In this document: positions 1,344 through 61,612 of the stretch, in pieces
Layout of the letters: each line of letters opens with the position of its first letter
Numbering within the stretch: position 1 is the first letter of the stretch
Sequence record: MT708547.1
Direction: 5' to 3' (one strand)
DNA length: 64,000 nt
Position numbers and translations under genes: made by a program
The notes under the pieces: generated by a model
The model's input: only the letters and a program-made list of their open reading frames with translations
What the model was told of the DNA's origin: nothing
Database searches by the model: none

Positions 1344-1802
1344 ATGCCTGGAAAACCAGAGAAAATTTATGACAATACAGAATTAACCATTATACTGAAA
1401 AATGTAAACAATTACAAGAATCTAAGTCCAGAAGCAAGGGAGATATTCAAAGAAACGAATATCAAGTACAAACCGAGCGGTGCTGAAAGACCCTATGATA
1501 TGGATCATATTTACTATATGATTAGAGTTCTAACTGAGGTGTCACTTGATTCAGTACGAAAGAGTTTAATTCTAAGGACAGGTGTAGTATTATCTAACAA
1601 GTCAATACAAAGATATAAGCGTGTTGTAATAGAAGTATCAAAAGCATTGTTATGTACACACAGAAATGGTATTGCTTTGCATATCAAAAAAGAAGAAGGA
1701 AAACACTATTTGACAGATCAACAAAGTTCCAGATTGAACACTTTAAGGAAAAAGGGTGTCCCTATTGAGGACATGATAAATTACCTACAGAAACTGCTCT
1801 AG
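1344..1802 (+). CDS. Hypothetical basic protein, possible HTH DNA-binding protein
   Basis: 152-aa basic ORF; SLDSVRKSLILRTGVVLSNKSIQRYKRVV is HTH-like; ends immediately before the repeat island. Confidence 0.45.
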   Translation: MPGKPEKIYDNTELTIILKNVNNYKNLSPEAREIFKETNIKYKPSGAERPYDMDHIYYMIRVLTEVSLDSVRKSLILRTGVVLSNKSIQRYKRVVIEVSKALLCTHRNGIALHIKKEEGKHYLTDQQSSRLNTLRKKGVPIEDMINYLQKLL

Positions 1803-1921
1803 CCCAGTATTCATGCGGGTTGTAGGAATTAGGGACACCTTTTTGTGTGTTTTTTTGGTGCAGTGTCCCTAATTCAGACCAAGAACCCAGTATTCATGCG
1901 GGTTGTAGGAATTAGGGACAC
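1803..1921. repeat. Two exact 36-bp direct repeats with an intervening inverted 13-bp partial copy (iteron-like)
   Basis: CCCAGTATTCATGCGGGTTGTAGGAATTAGGGACAC at 1803..1838 and 1886..1921; GTGTCCCTAATTC (reverse complement of the repeat end) at 1863..1875. Confidence 0.9.
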
Positions 1922-2328
1922 TCTATTATTAAATTCATACTTTTCCTGTCCTTAATTCAATAGGTCGCTACGCTCAAATATTGATCTTCGTCACTCCGTT
2001 CCTCGATCAATATTAAAATCGGCAATTTGCGTTTTGTTCTCGATTCGCAAGCGAACCAATCACAAACCCGCAGCGAATTGCGAATCTCCCTTCGGTCAGT
2101 CAGTAATACTGCTTTTGGGAGAAAGCAACTCTCGGAGTGATGAAAAACGAATTCCATTCGCCTCATGAAAAACCAACGAATAGTCGGTTCTGTTGAATTA
2201 CTTGAATTATAATTGTCTGTATTCACTTCTAAGAAGTTTTATACACTTCCTTAGTGGTTCTATGTCTTAAACAAGAAAACACATCAGAATGCGATACAGA
2301 GCGTTTTATGTGGTGTTACAGAAATAAC

Positions 2329-2360
2329 AAAAGGAGCACAAGGCTCCCTTTGTTTTTTTT
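2329..2360 (-). terminator. Rho-independent terminator after gp5-like gene (possibly bidirectional)
   Basis: GGAGC-ACAAG-GCTCC stem flanked by A and T tracts next to the stop at 2362. Confidence 0.6.
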
Positions 2361-2361
2361 A

Positions 2362-28362: not shown

Positions 28363-31300
28363 ATGTATATTGATGCATATATGGAACGAAAACGTAGTGG
28401 TGATGTGTTGCATGTAGTAGAACGAAAAAATGGAAAGCGTATTCTACGAGAATTACAACCACTATATGAGTATTATGTAGAAAATGTTAATGGTAATCAC
28501 AAAACCATTTATGGTACTAAAGCAGAAAAACTGGAATTCGATACTGCATCTGAACTAAAACGAAGTATAGAAAAAAATGTAGCAAATGGAATCAGAACAT
28601 TTGAAGGTAAATTCAATGTTGTATTCAAAACGCTTGCTCAATACTATATGGGTACTGAATCACCAGATTTAAACATTGTATTCTTCGATATAGAAACTGA
28701 TTTTCATAAGAAATTTGGTTATGCATCTCCATCTAATCCCTTTAATCGTGTAACAGCCATTTCATTATATCAGTCATGGACAGGTAAAGATTATGTACTT
28801 ACCCTTGCTCCAGAAGATATGACAACAACAGAAGCACAGGATATTGTCAATAAACTAAATGCGGAAACTAATGATCCAAATTCAAGTGTAATTCTTTATA
28901 CTGATGAAAAGGAAATGTTCATGGATTTCTTTAGTCTAATTGATGATAGTGATGTATTATCTGGATGGAATAGTGAATTTTTTGATATTCCTTACATGAT
29001 TAACAGAACCAAAATTATCTTCAATGAAGCCATGACTGCTCGTTGGTGTTTATGGAATAAAAAACCAATTGCACGTGAAGCGGATAACTTTGGTAAATTG
29101 GTACAGACATATGATTTGGTTGGTCGAGTTCATCTTGATTATCTTGCTCTTTATAAGAAACACGCTGCTCAGGTAGAACAATCGTATAAACTTGATTATA
29201 TCGCAGAAAAAATCACAAAAGAAAATAAAGTACAGTACGAAGGATCTCTGGATAAATTATATAGAGAAGATTATATGACTTTCCTTCGATATTCTAAACA
29301 GGATAGTATTCTTCTCAAAAAAATCGATTCTATTCTTGACTATATTAGTCTGCATAACCGACTGGCACATAAAGAATGTGTTCTCATCAAAACTACTATG
29401 GGTTCAGTAGCACTGATTGACACTTCAATTATCAATCTAGCACACAAACGTTGTGAAGTGGTATTTGATAAAAAAGAAGAGGTTGAAATTGATCCAGAAC
29501 TTGAGTACTATGATGGATACGATGATGATGAAGACAATAATGATTCAAAACTCAGTGCAAAAGCAGCAGGTGCATGGGTACAAGATCCAATATTAGGATT
29601 AGTTGAATACTTAGGTTGTACTGACTTTAACTCACTTTACCCAACTGTACTTCGAACTCTAGGAATGAGTACTGAATGTATTCTTGGGCAAATTAGACAA
29701 GATTATACAGAAAAATACTTAGAAGAACGTATATCTGAACAAAAAGCAAAGTCTAAATCAAAATCATTTGAACCGGAGTGGACAGCAGCATGGCATGGTT
29801 TATTCGCCGCTGTGGAGTTTACGATGGTACATGAAAGAAGTGAAAAACTACTGACTATTGATTTAGAAGATGGCAGTTCTTTCCAGGCAACTGGTTCACA
29901 GTTATATGATATTATATTCAGTCCAGAAAGTACTATTGTACTTAGTGCAAATGGAACACTATTTGATAAATCAAAATATGGTGTTATTCCAGATATCCTA
30001 ACGCAATGGTATTCTGAGCGTAAAGCCCAGCAAAAAATGGTAATTGATTATAAACATATGGCTTCAGATGGTTGGGAAATCCCATCACCTGATATTGTTC
30101 AAAATATGTTTTCACAATTCAGTACTAAATCATACTATAAAACAAACCTTCATGAAGAAGATCCAGTATATCTTCTACGTAAAGCTATAGGTGATAATAA
30201 TCTTGAAGAAATTGCTCGTCTTATTGTAGAAAATAATTTAGTACTAAAAGATGGACGTATTTTTTGTTCAGATGAGGATAAAAAATATTTCAAACAACAA
30301 AGTGCTTTCTGGAAACAAAACCAACAAATTCGTAAAATTCTTCTAAACAGTCTTTATGGTGCACTATTGAACAAAGGAAGTACTTTCTTTGATAAACGAC
30401 TTGGACAATCAGTAACACTAACTGGCCGCTCAATGACAAAACACATGGCAAGTCGCATTAATGAAATTACTACTGGGGTTTATAATCACACTGGTGGTAG
30501 TGTTATATATGGTGATACCGATTCTGTGTACTTCAGCGTTGTTCATTATTTAAAAGAACAAAACATTCCATGTGATCTAAGTAAAGAAGAGATTGTGGAT
30601 ATGTATATAAAAATTGGCGATGAAGTGGGTGAATCTTTTCCTGAATTTATGGACAAAATGTTCAATACTGGAATTGAAAAAGGTAAAATTGTAGGTGCTG
30701 ATCTGGAAATGGTTGGCTCCCGAGGGCTGTTCCTTAAAAAGAAACGTTATGCTATACTGAAATATTGGGAAGATGGGTTCCGTAAAGATGTTGATGGTAA
30801 ACCTGGTGAAATCAAAGCAATGGGGCTTGAGATTAAGCGTTCAGATACACCAAAATACATCCAGAACTTCCTTGAAGAGACTTTAATGGCATTACTGGTA
30901 GGGGAGTCCGAGAGTGAATTAAAACAGCGTGTACGCGATTTTAAGGCGGTATTTAAGGACAAACCAGCACACGAAAAGGGTTCACCTAGAACAGTGAAAA
31001 ATTATTCAAACCTTGAAGCTGATTTTAAAAATACTGGTAAATGTCATGTAGGTCACGTCCTCGCTGGTATTCAATGGAATATGTTACGCAATGCATATGA
31101 TGATAAAACTGTGCCAGAAGTTACTGATGGTACTAAAGTGATTGTATGTGATTTGAAACCAAATCCACTTGGAATTACTAAAATTGGTTATCCAATTGAT
31201 TGTGCTGAGTACTTACCTGAGTGGTTCCTTGAATTACCGTTCGATACAGATAAAATGGAAGAAATTATCTTAACTAAAAAACTGGATAATATCTTTGGTA

Positions 31301-31365
31301 TTCTTGATATGGATATTGGTATTCATGAAAAAAGTACTGCACAGGATTTTGGATTTTTCTCGTAA
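28363..31365 (+). CDS. gp43: Family B DNA polymerase
   Basis: Exonuclease motifs FFDIET, GWNSEFFDIPY, YSKQD; polymerase motifs DFNSLYP, KILLNSLYG, YGDTDS, KKRYA. Confidence 0.97.
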   Translation: MYIDAYMERKRSGDVLHVVERKNGKRILRELQPLYEYYVENVNGNHKTIYGTKAEKLEFDTASELKRSIEKNVANGIRTFEGKFNVVFKTLAQYYMGTESPDLNIVFFDIETDFHKKFGYASPSNPFNRVTAISLYQSWTGKDYVLTLAPEDMTTTEAQDIVNKLNAETNDPNSSVILYTDEKEMFMDFFSLIDDSDVLSGWNSEFFDIPYMINRTKIIFNEAMTARWCLWNKKPIAREADNFGKLVQTYDLVGRVHLDYLALYKKHAAQVEQSYKLDYIAEKITKENKVQYEGSLDKLYREDYMTFLRYSKQDSILLKKIDSILDYISLHNRLAHKECVLIKTTMGSVALIDTSIINLAHKRCEVVFDKKEEVEIDPELEYYDGYDDDEDNNDSKLSAKAAGAWVQDPILGLVEYLGCTDFNSLYPTVLRTLGMSTECILGQIRQDYTEKYLEERISEQKAKSKSKSFEPEWTAAWHGLFAAVEFTMVHERSEKLLTIDLEDGSSFQATGSQLYDIIFSPESTIVLSANGTLFDKSKYGVIPDILTQWYSERKAQQKMVIDYKHMASDGWEIPSPDIVQNMFSQFSTKSYYKTNLHEEDPVYLLRKAIGDNNLEEIARLIVENNLVLKDGRIFCSDEDKKYFKQQSAFWKQNQQIRKILLNSLYGALLNKGSTFFDKRLGQSVTLTGRSMTKHMASRINEITTGVYNHTGGSVIYGDTDSVYFSVVHYLKEQNIPCDLSKEEIVDMYIKIGDEVGESFPEFMDKMFNTGIEKGKIVGADLEMVGSRGLFLKKKRYAILKYWEDGFRKDVDGKPGEIKAMGLEIKRSDTPKYIQNFLEETLMALLVGESESELKQRVRDFKAVFKDKPAHEKGSPRTVKNYSNLEADFKNTGKCHVGHVLAGIQWNMLRNAYDDKTVPEVTDGTKVIVCDLKPNPLGITKIGYPIDCAEYLPEWFLELPFDTDKMEEIILTKKLDNIFGILDMDIGIHEKSTAQDFGFFS

Positions 31366-45589: not shown

Positions 45590-46411
45590 ATGACAAATAA
45601 ACTTGAAGAATTTGTGAATTCTATTGCAGTACTGGATACTGAAACCAATGGTATTCTTGAAACCGATGAAATTATAGAATTTAGTATTTCATTTCCAGAA
45701 TCATTGAATGATTCTATTGATAATATTATGAATTACACCAATCGTTATAAACCACAAAAAGAAGTGCCAGCTATAGCAAGTTCAGTTCATTTTATTACAA
45801 ATGAAGATTTGGAAAGTTGTGGAACTTATGATTCTGAATTACCAACAATTGATGCATTAATGGGAAGTCGTCAATATTATGTTGGTCACAATGTACAGTT
45901 TGATCGTAGAATGATGCGTCAATGTGAAGATAAATATCGCAGTGAACCTTCTCAATATCTATATAAAGATAATTGGATTTGCACTTTACGATTAGCCAAA
46001 AAACTTCATGCAGAAGATTCTGATTACGATAATATGACTCTAAGTTACTTATGGTTTAAACTTGGGTGTTATAAGGGGCATCGTAAAGTAGAAGCACATA
46101 GTGCACGTGATGATGTTTTTATGTGTTACTCGGTGCTAATTAAATTAGTTGAAGAATGCATTTCACTTGGAATCATTGATCCAAATAATGATATTGGATC
46201 TCAAATTATTCAGTACTGTAATACTCCTATTATCTATGAAAAAGTAACATTTGGTAAACACAAAGGAATGAATTTTTCTGAATTACCAATGGACTACCTT
46301 ATGTGGATGATTACAAATAGTGACATTTTAAATACTGACAAAGAAGATTGTGATATGGATTTGGTGGCAACTTTTGAGTACGAATATAACAGAAGGACAA
46401 ACGCCAATTAA
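45590..46411 (+). CDS. DEDDh 3'-5' exonuclease (ExoX / Pol III epsilon-like)
   Basis: VLDTET, HFIT, GHNVQFD, WICT, AHSARDD motifs; C-terminal TFGKHKG...YLMWM. Confidence 0.88.
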   Translation: MTNKLEEFVNSIAVLDTETNGILETDEIIEFSISFPESLNDSIDNIMNYTNRYKPQKEVPAIASSVHFITNEDLESCGTYDSELPTIDALMGSRQYYVGHNVQFDRRMMRQCEDKYRSEPSQYLYKDNWICTLRLAKKLHAEDSDYDNMTLSYLWFKLGCYKGHRKVEAHSARDDVFMCYSVLIKLVEECISLGIIDPNNDIGSQIIQYCNTPIIYEKVTFGKHKGMNFSELPMDYLMWMITNSDILNTDKEDCDMDLVATFEYEYNRRTNAN

Positions 46412-46428
46412 TAACAAGGAAGATATAA

Positions 46429-47964
46429 ATGGAAATACCAAAAGTAGGAACAGGAACGTTCAGACCAAAGGCCAAAAAAGGTACTTCGTGCAAATTGATT
46501 ATTCAAGATGAGGTTAATTGTAAGTTCGAAGGGTTAGATCCTTCCTTGCGTTCATTATTGATAAAAGAAGTATCATATATTTTACCATATGCGAAATTCA
46601 CTCCAGCAGGTAGACTTGGCCGCTGGAATGGTGAAGTTAATTTTATGAATATGGGTGGTGGTACATATTTACATATGCTTGATAAACTTCTTCCAATATT
46701 AGATGAGTACGAAGTACAAATTGAATTAGAAGATCATCGAGTTGATTATAATTTCCAGTTTGACCCAATTGATGAAAATATTTTCAGTGATGTTGTATTT
46801 CCAATTGGTCATCATATGGAAGGTAAAAGTATTATTCTTCGTGAACACCAGGTTAATTCAGTAAATGCATGTTTGGCAAATCCACATGGATTGTTATTAG
46901 CAGCAACTGGAGCCGGAAAGACGATTATCTGTGCAGCGTTAGCTCGTTCAGTACAGAAATACGGTCGTTCAGTAATTGTTGTCCCTAGTACTGATTTAGT
47001 TCAACAGACATATAATGATTATGTTATGATGGGACTTGATACTGGGATGTTTTGTGGTGCTCAAAAGGATTTCGGTCATCAACATACTATTACTACATGG
47101 CAATCATTTAACTCCTTGTGGAAAAAAACCAAGAAGGGTGAAATAGAATTAACAGAGCAAGATGTTCATGATTTTATTGATGGTGTTGTTTGTGTTATTG
47201 TTGATGAAGTACAAACAGCCAGAGGTGATGCATTATCTAATCTATTATCAAAAGTAATGCAGAATGTTCCTTTGCGTTGGGGTTTAACTGGAACAATTCC
47301 AAAAGATCAAATTGAAGCAGCCAGAATTAAATGCAATCTTGGCAATGTGATTTATACTGTTACATCAAAAGAATTACAAGATAAAAAGATACTAAGCACG
47401 TGTAACATTAGTTGTATAAAATTAAAAAGTTCAATGAAGTTTGAGAATTATGCCGAAGAATTAAAATTTCTAACAACTGATAGAGAAAGAATGTCATATG
47501 TTGCTAAGCTTATTCAAGCATTATCTGAATCAGGTAATACATTAGTATTGGTTGATAGAATTGAATGTGGTAATCTTTTATGTGAATTTTTAGGTTTACC
47601 AAAATCAGAATTTGTTAAAGGTGACACAAAGAAAAAAGATCGTGAATCTTCTTATGGTGAAATTCGCTGGGCTGATAATAAAATTTTAATTGCTACATAT
47701 GGGGTTGCTAGTACAGGCATAAGTATTTCACGACTCTATAACGTAGTTCTTATAGAACCTGGAAAAAGTTTCATTAAGACAATTCAAAGTATAGGACGTG
47801 GATTACGCGTTGCCGAAGACAAAGACCATGTTGAAATCATTGATATCAGTAGTTCAACAAAATACAGTGCAAAACATCTCAGAGAGCGTTTGGTTTATTA
47901 CAAGGAAGCAAAATATCCACATAATGTCATAGAAGTAAAAGACTGGCAAAATCTCTCAGACTAA
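46429..47964 (+). CDS. uvsW: SF2 DNA helicase
   Basis: LREHQ, ATGAGKT, IVDEVQ, GLTGT, STGISI, QSIGRGLR motifs. Confidence 0.93.
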   Translation: MEIPKVGTGTFRPKAKKGTSCKLIIQDEVNCKFEGLDPSLRSLLIKEVSYILPYAKFTPAGRLGRWNGEVNFMNMGGGTYLHMLDKLLPILDEYEVQIELEDHRVDYNFQFDPIDENIFSDVVFPIGHHMEGKSIILREHQVNSVNACLANPHGLLLAATGAGKTIICAALARSVQKYGRSVIVVPSTDLVQQTYNDYVMMGLDTGMFCGAQKDFGHQHTITTWQSFNSLWKKTKKGEIELTEQDVHDFIDGVVCVIVDEVQTARGDALSNLLSKVMQNVPLRWGLTGTIPKDQIEAARIKCNLGNVIYTVTSKELQDKKILSTCNISCIKLKSSMKFENYAEELKFLTTDRERMSYVAKLIQALSESGNTLVLVDRIECGNLLCEFLGLPKSEFVKGDTKKKDRESSYGEIRWADNKILIATYGVASTGISISRLYNVVLIEPGKSFIKTIQSIGRGLRVAEDKDHVEIIDISSSTKYSAKHLRERLVYYKEAKYPHNVIEVKDWQNLSD

Positions 47965-48010: not shown

Positions 48011-48466
48011 TTGTGTAAAATCAACAAGGAAGTAGAAATTATGGAATTAAGAACTAGCATTTCTTTTATTGGTACTGAAGATGTACTATCTAAAATCGAT
48101 TATCTAATCAATGAAGAATCTCTTATCGATGATATGGTTTATTCTCTGGATTTTATCTCTGAACTGGAAACAGAAGATACTTATGTTTATCGTTGTTACA
48201 GTACTGGTGATTCGTGGGTAAACATCTATGATATTCATTCACGATTTTCTACAAATGGAATTGATAAATGTGATATCATTTACACCAGTACTGATTCAGA
48301 GACTTATGTTGATGTGATCAGTTTGAGTGGAAATTTTGATGCTTATGTTGATTGTGATCCTGAAAAAATTCAGGAAATTTGTGAAACATATGGACTTGAA
48401 TTTTTTGGTTCAGATGAACCAGAAGAAGAATACGACGACGATGAAGAAGAAGAGGGATATTATTGA
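48011..48466 (+). CDS. Hypothetical acidic protein (probable start ATG 48041)
   Basis: ORF with AAGGA RBS and acidic tail. Confidence 0.6.
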   Translation: MCKINKEVEIMELRTSISFIGTEDVLSKIDYLINEESLIDDMVYSLDFISELETEDTYVYRCYSTGDSWVNIYDIHSRFSTNGIDKCDIIYTSTDSETYVDVISLSGNFDAYVDCDPEKIQEICETYGLEFFGSDEPEEEYDDDEEEEGYY

Positions 48467-48963
48467 TGAATATTTTAACACCAGAAAATAACGCATTTGA
48501 TATGGATTTGGTATCAGATTTAATTCCCGAAGAAATGTATTGTGTACTGGATTTAAGTCCAGGTGGAGATAGTGATTTTTATTTTCGTCATATCCTCAAT
48601 ACTATTACATTCAACAGCAACAGTGCTGATATTCAAATTGGTAATAAAGTACTACAAGTGCCTCTCAACTGGCAAATTATGTTAGGTGACGAAGACACTG
48701 GAATGGTAGAAATGTGTACTATTGAAAACATTCTTAATATGAAAGAACCAAAAGCATATGTTTTCAATCCAATTCGTTCTATGTATCCACGTTTTGAACC
48801 AGTTAAAGTACTAAGAGCATTTACTCTACCTACTAAATGGCAAATTCCAATTGTACCAAAAAAGAATTTGCTATGTGTTCCATTACAACACGGTTCTAAT
48901 CCACCTTGCGTATATTTCGCAGATGAAAATGAGAAAATTCAGGATTTACATTTGGGGCTATAA
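48463..48963 (+). CDS. Hypothetical protein
   Basis: 166 aa, translationally coupled. Confidence 0.6.
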   Translation: MMNILTPENNAFDMDLVSDLIPEEMYCVLDLSPGGDSDFYFRHILNTITFNSNSADIQIGNKVLQVPLNWQIMLGDEDTGMVEMCTIENILNMKEPKAYVFNPIRSMYPRFEPVKVLRAFTLPTKWQIPIVPKKNLLCVPLQHGSNPPCVYFADENEKIQDLHLGL

Positions 48964-49760
48964 TGTCTGATAAAAAAGAATTACAAATTCAGGATGTATT
49001 ACATCATATTGATATTGCAGATTATAAGTACTATGATACACTTAGTGATGAAGAAAAGAAAAGTTTCACGCCATATACTGTTTTGAGATGGGTAAGTGCG
49101 TTGGACGATTCGTTATTGGTTACTTATAACGCAAAAGAGATTGAAAATGTATTCGGTAAATGGAAGGGTGGTGGTAAAGAAGCATTAAACGAGCTTGTAT
49201 TAGAACTCCAGAAAGATGGAGTTGGGGTTTTGAATGTATCAAAATACTGCCATACTGAACCTTATGATTGGCGAATCAAATTTTCAGTTAAAGACAAAAA
49301 TTCCAGCGAAAAATTGATTTCCACACTGAAGGATTTTGGAATTAAATCATATGAGATTCTCCAACTGGAAAATAGTGATGTACTAAAATATCAATTAATC
49401 TTTTTAAATGATATGGTTAACGATGGATTTTGGGAAATGAAAGACCATCCTGATTTAGTGTATCAATTGATGTGTTCGGTTCAGGATATGGTTGGTGCTG
49501 AACCTAAAGTACATAACTGGATCCCGTTTACTAAAGGTTTGAAGAATGTTAGTACTGAATTATTCAATATCATTAAACAAACCCAACCCGAATTAACACG
49601 AGAAAATATAAACGAGCTTGAATATAAAATTCTCCTTTTATCTTACTCTAAAGAATCTTTTAAAGAACTACTTGATGATTTTGGATATCAGGAGAGTGAA
49701 GTTAAAAAATTGTTAAAAACATTTAAAGAAGAATGTTCGAAATATGGCAAAGAGATCTAG
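48963..49760 (+). CDS. Hypothetical protein, possibly clamp-loader small subunit (gp62-like N-terminus)
   Basis: YYDTLSDEEKKSFTPYTVLRWVS resembles gp62-type N-termini. Confidence 0.4.
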   Translation: MSDKKELQIQDVLHHIDIADYKYYDTLSDEEKKSFTPYTVLRWVSALDDSLLVTYNAKEIENVFGKWKGGGKEALNELVLELQKDGVGVLNVSKYCHTEPYDWRIKFSVKDKNSSEKLISTLKDFGIKSYEILQLENSDVLKYQLIFLNDMVNDGFWEMKDHPDLVYQLMCSVQDMVGAEPKVHNWIPFTKGLKNVSTELFNIIKQTQPELTRENINELEYKILLLSYSKESFKELLDDFGYQESEVKKLLKTFKEECSKYGKEI

Positions 49761-50490
49761 TACAGGGGTAAGAAAAACCCCTATAAAGAAAATTAAAAAA
49801 GAAGAATATGTATGTTATTTCTGTGATAAAAAATTTAAAAGAGAAAATACTATACTAACGCATAAATGTATTAAACGTGACCGATATAATGATCGAGAAA
49901 GTCGTTTAATGAGAGAAGCATTAAGAATATATCTTTTGTTTATGAAAATAAATCATTTACCACTAAAGAAAGATGTTGAACCACTAATGTATTTTATCAA
50001 ATCTTTGTATTTTAATGACTTCTATGATTTCGCTAATTACATTCTAAATAATGATATACTTGAAAAAGAAAGATTTTTGAATCACATTATGACTAGTGGT
50101 ATGTCAGTGCAGAAATGGACTACCCATGCAGTACTTGAAGAGTGGGTTCTTCATGTATTAAAATACGAACATCCAGAACGTGGTGTAGAACGTTCTATTA
50201 TGGCAATAGTCGAATGGTCTGAATTGACGTCAAACGAATGGACTACCTTTTTTGATAATGTTTCTCCTGCTCGTTTTATTGCATGGGTAGAAAGTGGTAA
50301 AATATCTCCATGGTTATTATGGACTGTTCCACCGGAAGTGCTTAGAAAAATAACAGACCGACTTAGTGATTCTGAGCTTGAATATATAGTCAAATATATT
50401 GATCCTACTTATTATCAAATAAAAAGTATAAATCCTTATCAAGTATCAGTGCAAAAATTAAAAACTATATTACAAGATTCGGGATTTTAA
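49744..50490 (+). CDS. Hypothetical protein with N-terminal zinc finger
   Basis: YVCYFCDKKFKRENTILTHKC is a C2H2/C2HC-like finger. Confidence 0.6.
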   Translation: MAKRSSTGVRKTPIKKIKKEEYVCYFCDKKFKRENTILTHKCIKRDRYNDRESRLMREALRIYLLFMKINHLPLKKDVEPLMYFIKSLYFNDFYDFANYILNNDILEKERFLNHIMTSGMSVQKWTTHAVLEEWVLHVLKYEHPERGVERSIMAIVEWSELTSNEWTTFFDNVSPARFIAWVESGKISPWLLWTVPPEVLRKITDRLSDSELEYIVKYIDPTYYQIKSINPYQVSVQKLKTILQDSGF

Positions 50491-50493
50491 AAT

Positions 50494-50859
50494 ATGAGTA
50501 TATATAAACAAACGATCAATGAAGGTAAAATTGATAATCTCTATCACAGAAATGTAACTAAACCAGAAGTACAGAGTATTAAAAAATCATCTGAACTTAA
50601 ATTGCTCAGAAGTGGAAGTGTAACTGAAATAACACTGGATGATAAAACATTTCAGGTTTATGATGCACATAAGATTCATAATATTATTACGTTCGTTGAA
50701 CGACATGAAGATAGTATATTCAATTTAAGACAAGATAATAATAATCTTAAAAAACAAATACAAATACTATCAAAGAATATTCAAACATTACAAAGTACTG
50801 TTACAAAATTACAGGAACAATTAAAAAATGCAGGATTCAGTTCAAACAACTACTTATAA
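50494..50859 (+). CDS. Hypothetical coiled-coil protein
   Basis: C-terminal heptad repeat (LRQDNNNLKKQIQILSKNIQTLQSTVTKLQEQL). Confidence 0.6.
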   Translation: MSIYKQTINEGKIDNLYHRNVTKPEVQSIKKSSELKLLRSGSVTEITLDDKTFQVYDAHKIHNIITFVERHEDSIFNLRQDNNNLKKQIQILSKNIQTLQSTVTKLQEQLKNAGFSSNNYL

Positions 50860-51469
50860 AAAAGCAAGAACCGACATTGACATTGATGTAAAAGATGCAA
50901 AAGAAGTAATAAGTATTCTTCCTTGTACAAGGAGTACTGAAAAAATTAATGAAAGTGGGTTAATCGTTCATAATAGTGGAGTTCATTTTGATAATATTCC
51001 TGTTGATCCTGTTACTGGGTATAGTAGTATTGAATATAAAAAAGCCGAACAATTAGGGTATCAAAAAGTTGATATCCTTTCTAATTCGGCTTATAAGTAC
51101 GTGAGAGACCGAGAACATTTAATTGAACTCGTTAATAAAGAACCACAATGGGATTTATTGCTGATACCAGAAATAGTAGAAGAATTGTCACATATTAAAA
51201 AACACATTTCACTTCTTAATGTATGGAAACCACAAAGCATAGATGAACTGGCAATGTTTATTGCCATGATTCGTCCGGGGAAATACAAATGCCAAAGTAT
51301 GAATTCATGGGATGAAGTACGTAAAGAAATATGGGATTACAGTACAGTACCAGTGCAGGCAGATGGTAAAAAGGTAATGTATTTCAAAAAACCACATGCT
51401 TACGCGTATAGTTTTATGATTGTGGTGCAATTGAACGCATTAGTTGAACACATTATGTCCTCTTCTTGA
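50828..51469 (+). CDS. Miniature DNA polymerase III alpha (DnaE)-like catalytic core
   Basis: RTDIDID, HNSGV, YQKVDIL, AMIRPG, FKKPHAYAY occur in the order of DnaE motifs. Confidence 0.75.
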   Translation: MQDSVQTTTYKKARTDIDIDVKDAKEVISILPCTRSTEKINESGLIVHNSGVHFDNIPVDPVTGYSSIEYKKAEQLGYQKVDILSNSAYKYVRDREHLIELVNKEPQWDLLLIPEIVEELSHIKKHISLLNVWKPQSIDELAMFIAMIRPGKYKCQSMNSWDEVRKEIWDYSTVPVQADGKKVMYFKKPHAYAYSFMIVVQLNALVEHIMSSS

Positions 51470-51869: not shown

Positions 51870-52847
51870 ATGTCTCATAGTGGCGTATATATGTACCCAT
51901 ATAATCAGGAAGTATCATTAGGAAATTTCAATATGCCATTTCATAATGAGAAAATTGTTATATACAGAGGTGCGAATAATAATTTATCCTTTACAATCCA
52001 TAATGCTGATGGAAAATATACAAAAATAAAAGACAATGAATATTTGACATTCATGATCTTCGATGCAAGAAATAATAGTATTTTATTTAATACTGTACTT
52101 GATAAACAAATTCCATCGTGGTTATCTGAGAGTGGTCAGGCACGACAATCACTTGGTAATAAAGAAAAAGTTTATTATGGTTGTGTTGTTCCTGCTGGTG
52201 TTATTCAGGATACTAGTCCAGGTTTAAAATATCGATGGAGTATTGTCAAAACTACTATTGATGGTTCTCTTCTTGAACCCACTCAATATTTGTATACTGG
52301 ACTTGATTATGAAGCATATGGTGAATTACAAATTTCAGATAAAGCTGCACCTGTGTTTGTCCCCAGTACTGAAGTATCTAAGGATAAAAATTCTTCATGG
52401 AAGTCTATCAAAGATAGTTACAGAGAAGTTATCAGTGATTCTTTAAAAGGTGAATATGATGTAATGTGTACTTCTCCATTAGCAGCACAAATGCAATATG
52501 GGTTAGTTGATGGATTGAGTACGATTGCACTTTATACTGATAATTTTATTGGAAGAATACAATTACAAGGTTCACTTGAAAATAATGTACCGTCTGATGC
52601 AGAGAATTACAAATGGTTTATTATTAAATTAGATTCAAGTGAATACATTCAAAATAGTATAGATGAAAATGGATTCATTATTCCTATGAATGGAATACAG
52701 ACATTTAATTTCAAAGGAAATTATATGTGGTTAAGAGTTGTGGTATGTATTCCACCAATCGAGTATACTGTTCCTTATGATTATAATACTGTGCGTAAAG
52801 AATACGATCCATTAAAAACACTTCCAAAAATATTGATTCGTCGATAA
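51870..52847 (+). CDS. Hypothetical protein, probably virion structural
   Basis: 325 aa, beta-rich; CATAAATA at 51818..51825. Confidence 0.6.
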   Translation: MSHSGVYMYPYNQEVSLGNFNMPFHNEKIVIYRGANNNLSFTIHNADGKYTKIKDNEYLTFMIFDARNNSILFNTVLDKQIPSWLSESGQARQSLGNKEKVYYGCVVPAGVIQDTSPGLKYRWSIVKTTIDGSLLEPTQYLYTGLDYEAYGELQISDKAAPVFVPSTEVSKDKNSSWKSIKDSYREVISDSLKGEYDVMCTSPLAAQMQYGLVDGLSTIALYTDNFIGRIQLQGSLENNVPSDAENYKWFIIKLDSSEYIQNSIDENGFIIPMNGIQTFNFKGNYMWLRVVVCIPPIEYTVPYDYNTVRKEYDPLKTLPKILIRR

Positions 52848-52849
52848 AT

Positions 52850-52879
52850 TTGAACAAAAATACCTTTTAGTGATAGAAT
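52850..52879 (+). promoter_or_regulatory. TTGAAC-N18-TAGAAT promoter (primase/helicase)
   Basis: Conserved promoter class; implies the true primase start is ATG 52906. Confidence 0.65.
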
Positions 52880-52905
52880 GTTTTTATCAAAAGAAGGAAA
52901 ACGAG

Positions 52906-53964
52906 ATGAATCAAGTTCAAAATATAGTATCTCAAATTTTTAAAGACCCGGTGCCAGCGATAAACCAGTGGAAAAGACATAACTGTCCTGCTTGTGTTTT
53001 TCGTGGTCAGGGTCGCCCAGATACAAGAGGACGTGGAAATCATATGTTCAATGCTGATGGTGGTATTGCATATAACTGCTTTAACTGTCATTTAAAAGTG
53101 TCATGGGTTCCTGGTTTATATATGAGCAAAGATTTTAAATCTTTGCTTTCTTATTTTGGGGCTGATGAAAAAAGTATTGCATATTTAGATCTCTTCGTTA
53201 AAGAAATGGTCAATAATGAAGAATATAAAAAAGAAACACCATCCTCTAAACTATTTCAAAATTTACAAACAAGATCGTTGCCAGAGAATGCAAAAACATT
53301 TATAGAATGGGCTAATACTGAACAACCACCAAAGGAATTCATTTCAGTACTAAATTCCGTAAATTCAAGAAATCCATATATTCTGGATTTGGACTTATAC
53401 TGGAGTCCATCTAAAGAGCATCAATTATATAATCGATTTATTATACCTTATTATATGAATAATAAAATAATTGGTTATACTGCTCGTCATAAAGAACACA
53501 ATCCCACCAAGTCATTGCGATATATAAACCAAGTCAGTACTAATATTTTATATAATTATGATTTATTAAATGATAACAGAATTAAAACGATTTTAGTTAC
53601 CGAAGGACCAATTGATGCCGCATTGATGGGTGGTGTAAGTGCAAACAACTATTTTTTAACTTCTCCACAGATTGAATTATTAAAAGCAGCACAGGAACGT
53701 GGTAAGAAAATAGTCATTGTACCTGACAGGGATAAAAATGGATTGGAAGCAGTAAATCAGGCAATTGATAATGGGTTTAGTGTTTCATTACCAAATTTTG
53801 GAACTATTAAAGATCCAACCAAATTCGGACACAGACCAATAAAAGACTTCGATGAAGCATGTGTTATATATGGAAGAATATTTTGTTTACAATTAATACA
53901 CGATTCAATACTAGATACTGAATTTTCAATCAAAACAAGAATTGCAAATTCATGGGATATATAA
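52906..53964 (+). CDS. gp61: DNA primase
   Basis: CPAC...YNCFNC zinc finger; TOPRIM motifs VTEGPIDA and VPDRD; AAGGA RBS before 52906. Confidence 0.88.
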   Translation: MNQVQNIVSQIFKDPVPAINQWKRHNCPACVFRGQGRPDTRGRGNHMFNADGGIAYNCFNCHLKVSWVPGLYMSKDFKSLLSYFGADEKSIAYLDLFVKEMVNNEEYKKETPSSKLFQNLQTRSLPENAKTFIEWANTEQPPKEFISVLNSVNSRNPYILDLDLYWSPSKEHQLYNRFIIPYYMNNKIIGYTARHKEHNPTKSLRYINQVSTNILYNYDLLNDNRIKTILVTEGPIDAALMGGVSANNYFLTSPQIELLKAAQERGKKIVIVPDRDKNGLEAVNQAIDNGFSVSLPNFGTIKDPTKFGHRPIKDFDEACVIYGRIFCLQLIHDSILDTEFSIKTRIANSWDI

Positions 53965-53978
53965 AATAAAGGAATATA

Positions 53979-55547
53979 ATGAACAAATCAATCACACCGG
54001 ACGTGACTCAATATAGTATTAAAAATCAAGAATATCTTCTTTCTCAAATTTTTACAAATCCAGATTTGTATGTACGTTGTAAAAATATCTTAAAACCTGA
54101 ATATTTTGATAAGATATTTCAAAACAGTATTCAGTACGTTCATGAATACAGTAATAAGTACAACGGTGGTTTCCCAACTCTACTTGATATTGAAGTTAAA
54201 AGTGGATTTCAATACACTGAAATTAAAGTATCTGAATTAAACAAACAAGCTGTATTAGATCATTGCGGTGAATTTTGTCGTCACAAAGCACTAGCACTTG
54301 CAGTTGAAAAGGGAATGGAATTAGTTCAACAAAAAAAATATGGTGGTATTGAAGAATTAATCCGTGAAGCCATGCTTGTTACTGTACAAAATGAATTAGG
54401 TCTTGATGTATATGAAAACCCAGAGGAAACAATCCAGTCACTTAAAGATATGCAGGGTTCGATGCGAAGTGGATGGGATACTCTTGATTTCAAATTATTT
54501 GGTGGTTTTGGTAAACAAGAACTTGAAATATTCGCAGCGGCAAGTGGTGGTGGTAAATCGGTTGTACTACAAAATATCGCAGTTAACTTTTCCAAAATGG
54601 GATTAAATGGTGCATATATTTCACTGGAACTTGCAGAAGAACTGGTTGCGGTTCGTATCTATGGTATGATGACTGATACTAAACTGAGTACAATCAAAAG
54701 CGATGCAAGTAACATTGGTATGAAAATCGCCATTGATGGTAAACAGTCTGGTTCACTGAGGATTAAGCGTTTACCAGAATCGATTACAACTTCTAATGAT
54801 ATCGAAAGTTACATTCGAGAATTACAAATAAAAACTGGGATTAAACTGGATTATATTTGTGTGGACTACTTAGACTTGATGACCTCGGAACGTAGTACTG
54901 ATGCATCAAACGTGTTTGTTAAGGATAAATTTGTATCAGAAGAATTACGTGCCTTAGCACATACTATGGACATGACTGTATTCACAGCCGCACAGTTTAA
55001 CCGTAGTGGTATTAATGAAGAAAAGAAAAGTCAGGCACAAATTGCAGGTGGCATGTCAAAGATTTATACTGCTGATAACGTAATTTATATCGAAACTAAT
55101 AAAGATAAAGGTGAACTTTGGTTTGACTTCCAGAAAACTCGTAACAGTTCTGCTGTAGGTTCAAAACTTCGTATGTCTTATAATATGGACTCTCTTCGAG
55201 TACTGGATCATGCACAAACAATTCAGGAGCTTGAGTGTAATAAGAGTGGTTTTAAGCTCACACAGAGCACTATGGGTGTTGGTGGAGGCTCAGTGACACA
55301 ACCACCTTCGACTATGACAAGTCTTCGCCACAGCCTTTACAATGCAAATATGGGGCTATCTCAACCAGTTGAAGTTGAACACAATGTAGACAACACAAGT
55401 GTACTAAATACTGACAATGAGGATGTTTTAAATTCACCAGCATATGAAAATGAAACAATTGAAGAATTTGAAATTGTAGAATCGGTGCAGACAAAACTTT
55501 CTCCAAGTAAAATTAGTAATATGAGAGACTTTTTAGGGAAGAGATAG
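53979..55547 (+). CDS. gp41: Replicative helicase (DnaB family)
   Basis: AAASGGGKS Walker A, ISLEL, CVDYLDL, TAAQFNR, KTR motifs. Confidence 0.93.
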   Translation: MNKSITPDVTQYSIKNQEYLLSQIFTNPDLYVRCKNILKPEYFDKIFQNSIQYVHEYSNKYNGGFPTLLDIEVKSGFQYTEIKVSELNKQAVLDHCGEFCRHKALALAVEKGMELVQQKKYGGIEELIREAMLVTVQNELGLDVYENPEETIQSLKDMQGSMRSGWDTLDFKLFGGFGKQELEIFAAASGGGKSVVLQNIAVNFSKMGLNGAYISLELAEELVAVRIYGMMTDTKLSTIKSDASNIGMKIAIDGKQSGSLRIKRLPESITTSNDIESYIRELQIKTGIKLDYICVDYLDLMTSERSTDASNVFVKDKFVSEELRALAHTMDMTVFTAAQFNRSGINEEKKSQAQIAGGMSKIYTADNVIYIETNKDKGELWFDFQKTRNSSAVGSKLRMSYNMDSLRVLDHAQTIQELECNKSGFKLTQSTMGVGGGSVTQPPSTMTSLRHSLYNANMGLSQPVEVEHNVDNTSVLNTDNEDVLNSPAYENETIEEFEIVESVQTKLSPSKISNMRDFLGKR

Positions 55548-55558
55548 GAATAATGTGA

Positions 55559-55828
55559 ATGGACGCAAAAAACCAAAATCTATTAGATAGTATTTTTGAA
55601 CACACATCCGAAAAAAGATCAATACAGCATTTTAGTAATAGAGCAGATCACGCGATTAACTCTGTTATTAATTTACTTGAATATATAGAAACTGAATTTG
55701 ATGCAGACGACGCTGAGGATTTAAAAAAGCGTTTATTTCTTAGTATAAAGAATAGAGACTATAAAAAGTTTCAAAAAGGATTGGAGAATATTGCACTCGA
55801 TGAATCCAGAAAGAATAAGGATAATTGA
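55559..55828 (+). CDS. Hypothetical protein
   Basis: 89-aa ORF after the helicase gene. Confidence 0.6.
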   Translation: MDAKNQNLLDSIFEHTSEKRSIQHFSNRADHAINSVINLLEYIETEFDADDAEDLKKRLFLSIKNRDYKKFQKGLENIALDESRKNKDN

Positions 55829-57456
55829 TGATTTTTGACAAGTCCAAATTTGAAAAATTAACCAAACCACGCAAACTGAAATATATTCAGGAAAATGACT
55901 TTTTTGGATTCAATACGAAAAATGCAGTGATGGTATTGTATTGTATAGAAAATGGTTTAACGGATGTTGTATATGCACCATGTGGGGCTGAATGTAAAAT
56001 AACATCAACTAAACCATCCAAGTACTGTAATAGTTATAAAAACAGAAAGGAAGAAACATGTCCTTTGTGTCATAATTATTATAAAAATACAATGCAAGAG
56101 AAGTACAAAGAAAGTTGTACCAAAAAATATGGTGTAGAAAATCCAATGAAAAATGCTGAAATTAGGGAAATCTATAAACAGAATTTCATTGATAAAACAG
56201 GATATACAAATCCATTGTGCACAGGTACCGATTCAAGAACAAAAAGAGATCAAACTTGTATTGTATTATTTGGTTCGGTATCTTCACAAAAAGACCATAC
56301 TGTTAGGGATAAAACCATAAAAACAAGTACAGAAAAGTTTGGTACTGAACATCCTATGAAAAATAAAAATATTTCCACTAAAGCTGGAAATAACTTGAGT
56401 TTAGTTCTTAATAAAAAGAAAACAAAAAGGATCTTAGAAAATTTATCCGATGGTATTACATTCATCGATGATGAAAAACTGAAATTCAATCAAGAATATG
56501 AATTTCGTTGTGATACATGTAATAATATTTTTAAACACCATATATGGAATCTTGGAGCTAAAAAAATAAGTTGTCCTATTTGTTTTCCCAGGAATAACAA
56601 TTCAAGTATGCAAGAAAATGAAATTAGAGGATATATTGAAAGTTTTGGATTAAAAACAATTAGTACTAAAAATATTATACATCCTTATGAAATTGATATT
56701 TATATTCCTGAATTAAAAATAGGATTTGAATATAATGGTAGCTACTGGCACAGCACTAAATTTGTTGATAAAAATTATCATTTGATGAAGCTTGAACTGG
56801 CAGAAAAATGTAATGTTCATTTGATTAATATTCATGAAGTTGATTATCAAAACAATAAAGAAGTAATATTATCTAGAATTAAAAATGTTTTAGGTTTTTC
56901 TGAATCTACATATGCCCGTTCTTGTACTATAAAAGAAGTTGGTTCAAAAGAAGAGAAGGAATTTCTTAATAAAAATCATTTACAAGGTTATGTTAATAGT
57001 AAACTGTGTTATGGATTATATCATGATGATGTACTAATGGCTGTAATGTCTTTTGGTAAAACTCGATATGATAAGAATGATGATGGTGTATATGAATTAC
57101 TAAGATATTGTTCATCTGGTACTGTAATCGGTGGAGCATCGAGATTACTAAAACATTTTGAAAAATACAATAAACCAAAACGACTAATTTCATATGCATC
57201 AAGAGACTGGACAAGTATTAATAATAATTTATATAAAACGCTTGGATTTGAATTTGTGAAAAGTACTAAACCTAGTTATTTTTATGAAAAGAATAATACC
57301 AAATTCAGTAGATATCAATGTACTTTGAAAAAATTATATAAAAACGACCCTTCACTTTTACCTAATTTAACAGAAGATGATATAACTATTGGTTTGTATA
57401 AGTTTAATAAAATATACACTACTGGGAATTTGAAATATGAAAAAAACTATAAATGA
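55825..57456 (+). CDS. Hef-like homing endonuclease (PD-(D/E)XK/DUF559-type core + GNAT-like C-terminus)
   Basis: KYGVENP repeats; EIDIYIPELKIGFEYNGSYWHS; C-terminal YELLRYC...GGASRLL...LISYA...LYKTLGF. Confidence 0.75.
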   Translation: MMIFDKSKFEKLTKPRKLKYIQENDFFGFNTKNAVMVLYCIENGLTDVVYAPCGAECKITSTKPSKYCNSYKNRKEETCPLCHNYYKNTMQEKYKESCTKKYGVENPMKNAEIREIYKQNFIDKTGYTNPLCTGTDSRTKRDQTCIVLFGSVSSQKDHTVRDKTIKTSTEKFGTEHPMKNKNISTKAGNNLSLVLNKKKTKRILENLSDGITFIDDEKLKFNQEYEFRCDTCNNIFKHHIWNLGAKKISCPICFPRNNNSSMQENEIRGYIESFGLKTISTKNIIHPYEIDIYIPELKIGFEYNGSYWHSTKFVDKNYHLMKLELAEKCNVHLINIHEVDYQNNKEVILSRIKNVLGFSESTYARSCTIKEVGSKEEKEFLNKNHLQGYVNSKLCYGLYHDDVLMAVMSFGKTRYDKNDDGVYELLRYCSSGTVIGGASRLLKHFEKYNKPKRLISYASRDWTSINNNLYKTLGFEFVKSTKPSYFYEKNNTKFSRYQCTLKKLYKNDPSLLPNLTEDDITIGLYKFNKIYTTGNLKYEKNYK

Positions 57457-59878: not shown

Positions 59879-61612
59879 ATGAAAAAATATCTGAAAAATT
59901 TAGATACAGAAACAGAAAATCTATTTAATGAAATTCGTTCATTACTAAGTAACAAAAATAGTAAATCATGGCATACCTCAATAAATGCTTCTGGAAGGGA
60001 GCATTTAAAAAACGCGGTACTTAGAGTCTATCCAAGTAGTGATTTTTTACTATCAGAAGCATTAAAACTGATTATCAATCAAGAAGAACCACCGTATGCA
60101 GTATGTGGTAGAAAATGTAAGTATTTTAATGGTCAGTATGATAGATATTGTTCATTGGGTGTCAAACCCAATAAAAACACTTATTGTGAGAAGTGCAATA
60201 AACTCTGGCGAGAAAAGAAAAACAAATCCACAAAAGAAAACTGTCTAAATCAGTACAATGTTGAACACCCTTTTCAGCGAAATGATGTGAAAACAAAAGT
60301 ACATGAAACTAAAATACGAAAATACGGTACTAATTATAATAAAATAATTTCAAACAAATCATTCAGTACTTATTATAATAAAACTGGATATTCATGTCCA
60401 TTGAGTAATCCAGATATACAACAAAAAATTAAAGAAACTAATATTAAAAATTATGGATATGAAAATCCCGGTTCATCTCCATTAATTGTACAAAAAAGAA
60501 AAAATACCCAGAAGAAATTATATGGTCATGAACATTCTATGCAGAATGGTGATATAAAACTAAAGGTATTGATTAAATCTGCCACACAGAGAATGGATAG
60601 TATAAATTCAAAACTTGAATTTACTAATTTTATTCCTTTGTTTGATATTAGTGATTTAATTGGTTTGGATACATATAACAAAATGCCATACTGGTGTAAT
60701 ACACATGGTTTATTTTATTCATGTAGTAATTATAAAATTATATGTAATGAATGCACTCCCGTTCATATAAGCACACAACACAAAGAGATATTAAATTTTA
60801 TAGAAAATCTTGGTATTGAATGTGTAACGAATACACGCTCTGTTTTAAAAAGTACTATGGAATTGGATATTTTTATACCTGACTTGAATGTTGCAATAGA
60901 AATTAATGGTATGTACTGGCATAGTACTGAATACAAAGAACGACTGTATCATCAAAACAAAATGTTGGAATGTAAAGAACATGGCATTCACTTAATACAG
61001 ATATGGGAAGATGAATGGAATACCAAACAAGATTTGGTTAAATTTCGTTTGATGAATGTATTAAAATGCTCCAGTACTATATATGCAAGAAAATGTAAAA
61101 TAAAAGAAATCAATAAAAAAGAATGTGATAATTTTATTAATACATACCATATCCAAGGTTCTAGTTCATCATCTATTAGAATTGGTTTATATTACGAAAA
61201 TGAATTATATGCAGTTATGACATTTGGAAAATCCAGATTTGATAAAACTGTTCAGTATGAATTGATACGATATTGTTCAAAAAGTACAGTCGTTGGCGGT
61301 GCATCTAAATTATTAAAGTACTTTGAGAAGAAATACAAACCAGTGTCGTTGATTTCTTATGCAGATGCGTGTTGGAGTACTGGTGATTTATATATTAAAC
61401 TTGGTTTTACATATAATGGATTAACTGAACCTGGTTATTTTTATTACAAATCAAGTACTGGTAGAATTTCAAGGCATCAATGTCAAAAGAAAAAACTAGT
61501 CAATCAGGGATATGATGAAAATTTATCAGAATATCAAATATGTACCACTGTACTTAAATATAACAAAATATTTGATTGTGGTAATTTTAAATTCACTAAA
61601 TATTACATATAA
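59879..61612 (+). CDS. Hef-like homing endonuclease (paralogue of 55825..57456)
   Basis: ELDIFIPDLNVAIEINGMYWHS; C-terminal YELIRYC...GGASKLL...LISYAD...LYIKLGF. Confidence 0.75.
   Translation: MKKYLKNLDTETENLFNEIRSLLSNKNSKSWHTSINASGREHLKNAVLRVYPSSDFLLSEALKLIINQEEPPYAVCGRKCKYFNGQYDRYCSLGVKPNKNTYCEKCNKLWREKKNKSTKENCLNQYNVEHPFQRNDVKTKVHETKIRKYGTNYNKIISNKSFSTYYNKTGYSCPLSNPDIQQKIKETNIKNYGYENPGSSPLIVQKRKNTQKKLYGHEHSMQNGDIKLKVLIKSATQRMDSINSKLEFTNFIPLFDISDLIGLDTYNKMPYWCNTHGLFYSCSNYKIICNECTPVHISTQHKEILNFIENLGIECVTNTRSVLKSTMELDIFIPDLNVAIEINGMYWHSTEYKERLYHQNKMLECKEHGIHLIQIWEDEWNTKQDLVKFRLMNVLKCSSTIYARKCKIKEINKKECDNFINTYHIQGSSSSSIRIGLYYENELYAVMTFGKSRFDKTVQYELIRYCSKSTVVGGASKLLKYFEKKYKPVSLISYADACWSTGDLYIKLGFTYNGLTEPGYFYYKSSTGRISRHQCQKKKLVNQGYDENLSEYQICTTVLKYNKIFDCGNFKFTKYYI

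Follow-up and report, generated by a model that had tools for sequence, protein, structure and literature searches.

In the portions of Iyer et al. (2021; Viruses 13:63, PMC7824862) considered here, group 2.2 jumbo phages are credited with a "split minimal Pol III alpha," whose N-terminal protein binds NTP and whose C-terminal protein binds Mg2+ and the template, the two being encoded by distant genes. The same portions of the paper describe this enzyme as phage-specific and as accompanying a family B polymerase, propose a cooperation between both, and present the split enzyme as a model of ancestral Pol III. For phages CBB (PMC5259590) and Atu_ph07 (PMC6102473), the N-terminal protein is on record as a Pol III alpha that is "truncated." In this study, a window of 64,000 nucleotides (nt) from the genome of Klebsiella phage Muenster (MT708547.1), a RaK2-like jumbo myovirus of the genus Alcyoneusvirus, was analyzed with respect to an open reading frame (ORF) encoding a protein of 213 amino acids (aa), hereafter referred to as the C-unit; its 172-aa partner protein is referred to as the N-unit. 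A preliminary description of this window, made from the DNA letters alone, had proposed that the ORF encodes a miniature DnaE-like polymerase core. According to the analyses reported here, its product is probably one unit, the C-terminal one, of a minimal C-family DNA polymerase that is made of two polypeptides and is specific to T4-like group 2.2 jumbo phages and their relatives.

Judged by its sequence, the C-unit is a member of the phage family described by Iyer et al. (2021). The Muenster pair matches the split system point for point, and nothing essential differs as far as the relevant portions of that paper go, the identity being based on the matching description. The C-unit is a stand-alone protein of approximately 200 aa that comprises the Mg2+- and template-binding part only, the N-unit (CPT_Muenster_403) is encoded 34.1 kb away, and the genome is T4-like, with a family B polymerase, UvsW, UvsX, SSB, primase, and helicase, and with a clamp loader beside the N-unit. 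With the pair described by Iyer et al. (2021), and with "DNA polymerase" as the name of the C-unit in RefSeq and PHROGs, the finding is not new as far as sequence analysis is concerned. Several features go beyond the description in those portions of the paper, namely rare natural fusions of the two units, one of which is coupled to a primase-type Replicase gene, the occurrence of the system in a phage of 141 kb, and a constant convergent neighbor of 118 aa.

The C-unit corresponds to CPT_Muenster_362 and to RaK2 ORF124 (YP_007007279.1, "DNA polymerase"). Its orthologues in RaK2 and GAP32 are named "DNA polymerase" in RefSeq/NCBI, and the Muenster record labels it "putative membrane protein." All five motifs quoted in the preliminary description were located in the ORF and mapped (Table 1). 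In an alignment of 105 C-unit homologues with identities down to 26% (A1), D16 and D18 are conserved in 98% of the sequences, D20 in 96%, H48 and G51 in 97%, R149 in 98%, K187 in 91%, and H190 in 95%, and K80, D82, and P150 are invariant (100%), which bears out the expectation that the catalytic aspartates are kept in homologues. Two details of the motif assignment need revision. The arginine of "R-x-DIDID" is not conserved, R14 being retained in just 4% of the homologues. The HNSGV motif is present, but its proposed equivalence to the HAGGV strand of DnaE is tentative at most, as the profile aligned it, weakly (3.2 bits), with a different strand of the Thermus protein.

Searches with single sequences are nearly blind to the relationship between the C-unit and DnaE, which becomes visible only with family profiles and structure prediction. 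Against Pfam, the C-unit alone gave a sub-threshold match to DNA_pol3_finger (PF17657; aa 128-164, 14.4 bits with a cut-off of 22) and no match to PF07733; no match was obtained with the DnaE models of NCBIfam, and phmmer with the single sequence retrieved no polymerase from the PDB. It matched PHROG 11778 ("DNA polymerase") over its full length (residues 10-211, E 5.9e-104). When the profile of the 105 homologues was compared with the PDB, the nine best matches were all DNA polymerase III alpha subunits (E 1.3e-5 to 3.8e-4), including those of Thermus aquaticus (1.3e-5), E. coli (1.2e-4), and M. tuberculosis (1.4e-4), and the tenth match followed only at E 0.45. This match is composed of three collinear pieces, i.e., the DxD strand, the KxD strand through RPG, and the KSH motif, which agrees with the DnaE order of motifs claimed initially.

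An AlphaFold2 model of the C-unit computed from the same alignment (pLDDT 96.4, pTM 0.86) contains a palm in which strand 17-21 (DxD) is followed by a short helix, by a hairpin at residues 34-53, and by strand 80-85 (KxD), and an all-helical part (residues 95-212) with a long C-terminal helix (188-212) after the KSH motif (pLDDT ~98). In a Foldseek search of the PDB, the top eight matches of this model, and the only significant ones, were Pol III alpha structures (probability 0.97-1.0, E 1e-3 to 2e-2), with TM-scores of 0.35-0.50 on the query and approximately 14% identity to the DnaE chains, and in BFVD the matches were phage DnaE-type polymerases. The DnaE fold, which the preliminary description had named as a check, is thus predicted. 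The likeness of the C-unit to DnaE exceeds chance.

The model also bears on the annotation in the Muenster record. TMHMM predicts one transmembrane segment (Muenster annotation), the adjacent genes are labelled virion structural in RaK2, and the enzyme is heavily reduced, which could point to a membrane protein, to an inactive relic, or to a DNA-binding protein with a purely structural or regulatory function. The supposed transmembrane segment, however, is the conserved helix after the KSH motif, which is packed in the fold with a pLDDT of ~98 and is aligned to Pol III alpha. Moreover, the Asp triad, K80, R149/P150, and K187/H190 are retained in 91-100% of the 105 diverged homologues and the GRGS of the partner is invariant, unlike what would be seen in a relic. 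We regard all three possibilities as very improbable, and the label "putative membrane protein" of CPT_Muenster_362 is very likely wrong.

Similar to cellular Pol III alpha, the C-unit has a Pol-beta-like palm with DxD and D metal ligands and with a Lys two residues before the third Asp, and its RPG and KSH fingers motifs follow in identical order. The palm carries all three metal-binding carboxylates, D16/D18 and K80/D82 being located on strands of the model. The size is very different: the C-unit has 213 aa, or 385 aa together with the N-unit, compared with 1160 aa in the E. coli Pol III alpha chain. Unlike in Pol III alpha, the phage palm is divided over two polypeptides, and the GS nucleotide-phosphate-binding loop and helix ahead of the DxD strand are absent from the C-unit and provided in trans only. 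The spacers are strongly compressed, as had been claimed, with 64 residues separating DxD from the third Asp (E. coli, 152; Thermus, 153) and approximately 41 residues from RPG to the KSH His (approximately 121, i.e., about 80 more, in E. coli), and the C-unit ends 23 residues past this His. The interval that bears the thumb is shorter by approximately 90 residues and contains one short helix and a beta-hairpin in the model; no thumb is inserted in the palm. No PHP, clamp-binding, OB, or tau-binding parts were identified in either unit with Pfam and the alignments, where the C-unit shows only the weak finger match, in line with the earlier statement that PHP, clamp-binding, and OB domains are absent. 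With respect to curated family thresholds, the N-unit passes that of PF07733 and the C-unit remains below that of PF17657 (14.4/22). Because several of the defining domains were tested and are absent, the phage protein is related to cellular Pol III alpha but falls short of full membership in that family.

With its start 15 residues before the DxD strand, the C-unit chain lacks the first half of the Pol-beta-like palm, including the GRGS nucleotide-binding part. This half has been identified in CPT_Muenster_403, the N-unit, which is encoded three genes ahead of a gp44-type clamp loader and belongs to PHROG 11127. For genes encoding this 172-aa protein, the annotation "DNA polymerase III alpha subunit" dates back to GAP32. 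The N-unit matches PF07733 with 35.1 bits, above the cut-off of 23.9, and its family profile, in which R-G-S is invariant, aligns with residues 319-410 of E. coli Pol III alpha (E 1.2e-8); in the alignment to the E. coli protein, the N-unit sequence ends exactly at the starting point of the C-unit. Because the GRGS half resides in CPT_Muenster_403, the enzyme would be completed by a gene 34.1 kb away and not by its operon neighbors, which the preliminary description had considered possible. Of its "polymerase core," the relationship to DnaE and the C family is retained, but the core is not complete, since one half of the palm is a separate 172-aa protein. No N-unit was detected in the 64-kb window, either by tblastn with the N halves of the fusion proteins as queries or by a search of the six frames with the N-unit hidden Markov model (HMM), and the HMMs of both units found nothing there besides the C-unit.

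Four natural proteins contain both units fused in DnaE order, namely P0187 (375 aa), P0390 and P0391 (375-376 aa), and P0222 (336 aa). An N-terminal extension with G-R-G-S is present in P0187 and P0222, and the PF07733 match on P0187 spans the N/C junction (aa 97-207). The contig encoding P0391 keeps the downstream neighbors of the C-unit, beginning with PHROG 11637, which lies on the other strand, and continuing with PHROG 14467. In a search of phage genomes with P0187, the matches fell in two separate places in 56 of the 60 records listed. Both halves were further identified in a 141-kb Alishewanella phage, where they are 11 kb apart; tblastn detected only its C-unit, and the N-unit was found by HMM (E 3e-17).

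P0187 was modelled from a checked alignment of fusions, N-units, and C-units that contained fewer C-units (A4). Two alignments with many C-units (A2 and A5) were discarded, because MAFFT had set the N-units onto the C half. The resulting model (pLDDT 88.5, pTM 0.86) is weak only within its first 70 residues and within the linker that precedes the DxD strand. Its top 19 Foldseek matches in the PDB are all C-family polymerases (probability 1.0, E 4e-8 to 2e-4), among them DnaE of M. tuberculosis, Thermus, and E. coli and PolC of Geobacillus. Below DnaE and PolC, the list continues with other Pol-beta-fold transferases, including Cid1, GLD-2, CdnD, and poly(A) polymerase, which raises the alternative of a two-piece nucleotidyltransferase that does not copy a template, such as a terminal transferase, a DNA-end- or base-tagging enzyme, or a synthase of an anti-defence nucleotide signal. 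Many such enzymes exist within the Pol-beta-fold superfamily, and the thumb, clamp-binding, and OB parts are absent from the pair. However, these non-polymerase matches have E >0.3 and a probability of at most 0.07, far from the values of the 19 C-family polymerases. The RPG and KSH fingers motifs are specific to C-family polymerases and are 91-100% conserved, and the gene is always located amid primase, helicase, UvsW, and UvsX and not among defence or counter-defence genes. On balance, a transferase of this kind appears unlikely.

The fusion P0222 and a Replicase gene are encoded at 1516-4181 of a 7992-bp contig from JGI metagenome 3300080032 (L007). The P0222 gene is translationally coupled to a gene of 552 aa, sharing 4 nt with its end; the product of the latter contains a primase-type plasmid Replicase domain (PF03090, 50.7 bits) and a helix-turn-helix (HTH), and an endolysin-like PG_binding gene is located close to it. 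This contig may represent a small replicon carrying its own primase and minimal polymerase.

Beyond the homology, fold, conserved catalytic set, complementary partner, natural fusions, and replication context observed here, the two-polypeptide polymerase might operate as follows. The N-unit and C-unit would form an obligate heterodimer with the active site at their interface, because the polypeptide break falls in the loop just before the DxD strand and an active site is possible only at the N/C interface. The C-unit, which contributes the palm strands carrying D16, D18, D82, and K80 and cut-down fingers with RPG and KSH and no thumb, would hold the metals and the template, and the N-unit, which contributes the first palm part with the invariant GRGS, would hold the nucleotide phosphates. 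The pair may function as an active, template-dependent, distributive DNA polymerase of low processivity beside the gp43-like replicase. Its most plausible role would be to extend the primers of the adjacent primase, or else it might fill gaps in recombination-dependent replication or repair. Primer extension is the most attractive of these roles because of the constant place of the gene next to primase and helicase and the existence of a fusion coupled to a Replicase gene.

Homologues of the C-unit are numerous, with 335 in a protein set clustered at 90% and 274 cluster representatives at 50% identity, and nearly all of them are 183-231 aa in length. At least 587 relatives were identified in IMG/VR, of which 80 loci were used for the counts of neighbors (by phmmer) and fusions given here. 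The C-unit is a stand-alone ORF in all 80 loci, and no N-unit was found in their fetched flanks. A recent fragment of a host dnaE, one of the outcomes that would have spoken against the preliminary description, was ruled out, as the family is deep and phage-specific, with members down to approximately 30% identity and with approximately 14% identity to the DnaE chains in the structure matches. In the genome of Escherichia phage CMSTMSU (MH494197.1), the C-unit match at 260226-260689 is broken into two pieces that span no more than aa 221-374 of the fusion query, and a second place, corresponding to the N-unit, was not reported in the fusion-query search. The C-unit gene of this record may be interrupted or mis-assembled.

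The ORFs from 48463 to 51469 are tightly packed, with overlapping stops and starts (Table 1). The block consists of UvsW, the 166-aa, 265-aa, and 248-aa zinc-finger proteins, a small ORF, the C-unit, the convergent 118-aa gene, a 325-aa gene, primase, and helicase, and its order is retained in relatives at 37-50% identity. UvsW and primase/helicase border this block, as previously stated. Among the 80 IMG/VR loci, homologues were counted for the convergent gene in 78, the zinc-finger protein in 71, primase in 62, the 265-aa ORF in 59, helicase in 56, the 166-aa ORF in 52, and UvsW in 50. The 118-aa gene is thus the most constant neighbor of the C-unit; its homologues occupy the matching position in these 78 loci and also beside a fusion (L006). 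The 118-aa protein has an invariant W-W-x-x-S-N-R-x-x-P patch and a basic C-terminus, and a 46-sequence profile of it gave no PDB match. The zinc-finger and coiled-coil neighbors noted initially are both present in the packed block. The 248-aa protein contains one N-terminal, eukaryote-style C2H2-type finger with invariant C24, C27, H40, and C42, whose 46-sequence profile matched C2H2 fingers in the PDB (E 4.7e-7), and a Trp/Phe-rich domain of approximately 200 aa with no assigned family. The Muenster record begins this gene 165 nt later, cutting off the finger. The coiled-coil protein had no phmmer match in the 80 loci, and a small ORF is located at the same position in L008-L011. No family or PDB match was obtained for the 166-aa and 265-aa ORFs (Pfam, NCBIfam, and single-sequence PDB search).

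It might be argued that the C-unit acts alone or with its operon neighbors and that the distant N-unit is functionally unrelated to it. The neighbors are tightly packed and translationally coupled, and several are co-conserved with the C-unit (zinc-finger protein 71/80, 265-aa ORF 59/80, 166-aa ORF 52/80, and convergent gene 78/80), so that they may well be accessory factors. Against this, the C-unit is devoid of the GRGS-bearing half of the palm, this half is a separate conserved protein in the same genomes, and both units are fused in DnaE order in four natural proteins, one of them in the syntenic locus of the C-unit. Furthermore, no likeness to Pol III was detected in any neighbor by Pfam, PHROG, NCBIfam, and PDB searches. 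We give very little credence to this alternative. The same four resources gave no support for neighbors as gp45, gp59, or gp62 equivalents or as hidden polymerase parts, and the "gp62-like" neighbor of the preliminary description is accordingly dropped; the only PDB match of the neighbors, with single sequences or 46-sequence profiles, was the C2H2-type zinc finger of the 248-aa protein.

The full family B polymerase mentioned initially is indeed encoded in the window and is presumably the main replicase. A stand-alone DnaQ-type exonuclease gene, whose product was called "Pol III epsilon-like" in the CBB paper (PMC5259590), is located upstream of UvsW and is syntenic in closer relatives; its product is a candidate proofreader of the mini polymerase. 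As a fixed proofreading partner it was rejected, as phmmer found no homologue of it in the 80 more distant loci.

Several points weigh against a two-polypeptide C-family polymerase. By itself, the C-unit stays below the gathering thresholds of Pfam, and, with such large parts of DnaE absent, its TM-scores to the DnaE structures reach moderate values only (0.35-0.56). The pair has been modelled only as the natural fusion of a distant relative, whose C half is 36% identical. Residue 390 of E. coli Pol III alpha is Arg, whereas the N-unit family has a nearly invariant Glu at this position, which indicates that the nucleotide pocket is no simple copy of that of DnaE. There is no thumb, clamp-binding motif, or proofreading domain, leaving DNA grip and fidelity unexplained. 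RaK2 ORF123 and ORF126, which flank the C-unit, are labelled virion structural proteins, an odd fit with a replication operon. Literature searches found no biochemical or genetic work on any member of the family.

Homing-endonuclease signatures are also present in the window. The large terminase contains a LAGLIDADG homing-endonuclease domain (aa 294-349) ahead of Terminase_6N (aa 434-642), an arrangement indicative of an intein or of the insertion of an endonuclease domain. Just downstream of the primase-helicase genes are two large genes that resemble homing endonucleases and bear the annotation EDxHD or Hef-like in Muenster and RaK2.

Table 1. Features of the Muenster locus. Positions are those of the window (position in record MT708547.1 minus 186000), except for the N-unit, which is given in record positions.
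Feature	Residues or size	Position	Strand	Remarks
C-unit (CPT_Muenster_362)	213 aa	50828..51469	+	ATG start; first 32 nt overlap the upstream ORF
DIDID (D16, D18, D20)	aa 16-20	50873-50887	+	Aligned with chain residues 463-467 of Thermus Pol III alpha (metal-binding DxD)
HNSGV	aa 48-52	50969-50983	+	In palm beta-hairpin 44-53; only H48 and G51 conserved
KVDIL, KxD strand	aa 80-84	51065-51079	+	Aligned with K..D on the strand of the third catalytic Asp in Pol III alpha from E. coli and Thermus
AMIRPG, A-x-x-R-P-G of fingers	aa 146-151	51263-51280	+	Aligned with Pol III alpha RPG
FKKPHAYAY, F-K-K-x-H-x-x-Y	aa 186-194	51383-51409	+	Aligned with the Pol III alpha KSH motif (third piece)
N-unit (CPT_Muenster_403)	172 aa	271586..272104 (record)		34.1 kb downstream of the C-unit, outside the window
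Family B (gp43-like) DNA polymerase		28363..31365	+	Full-length, with exonuclease domain; PF03104 1.8e-21, PF00136 5.6e-21
Large terminase	889 aa	37604-40273	+	
DnaQ/RNase T-type 3'-5' exonuclease		45590..46411	+	Stand-alone; C-terminal QSregVF_b-like segment
UvsW-type helicase		46429..47964	+	Upstream border of the conserved block
166-aa ORF (PHROG 11279) and 265-aa ORF (PHROG 11758)	166 aa, 265 aa	48463..49760	+	Conserved
Zinc-finger protein (PHROG 11058)	248 aa	49744..50490	+	Directly upstream of the C-unit in 71/80 loci
Coiled-coil protein (PHROG 14909; RaK2 ORF123)	121 aa	50494..50859	+	Overlaps the C-unit start; poorly conserved
Convergent gene (PHROG 11637)	118 aa	51453..51809	-	3' ends overlap with the C-unit by 17 nt
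RaK2 ORF126		51870-52847	+	Labelled virion structural protein in RaK2
gp61-type primase		52870..53964	+	Downstream border of the conserved block
gp41/DnaB-type helicase		53979..55547	+	Downstream border of the conserved block
Homing-endonuclease-like gene		55825-57456	+	
Homing-endonuclease-like gene		59879-61612	+	

Replisomes with two polymerases operate in Firmicutes (DnaE and PolC) and in eukaryotes (Pol alpha and Pol delta/epsilon). By analogy, the phage pair would likewise be a small second polymerase beside the main replicase and near the primase, and a second polymerase in such a place would fit a role in primer extension and hand-off. Speculatively, a two-polymerase replisome may exist in T4-like jumbo phages and their relatives, in which the mini C-family enzyme is dedicated to Pol-alpha-like primer extension or to gap filling, the zinc-finger and 118-aa proteins replace the missing thumb or clamp contacts, and P0222 with its Replicase constitutes a self-contained primase-polymerase module with the smallest known C-family polymerase; we put this forward as a tentative scheme that could well turn out otherwise. 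Under it, the mini polymerase would work with the adjacent primase and helicase before handing over to the family B replicase.

For annotation, CPT_Muenster_362 is to be read jointly with CPT_Muenster_403. An active pair would be the smallest C-family DNA polymerase by a wide margin, with approximately 385 residues in two chains compared with approximately 1,100-1,200 in one, and its active site would be assembled across a subunit interface. Such an enzyme would reveal what catalysis truly requires of the bacterial replicase, would place a bacterial-type and an archaeo-eukaryotic-type polymerase within one phage replisome, and would bear on ideas about the origin of Pol III.

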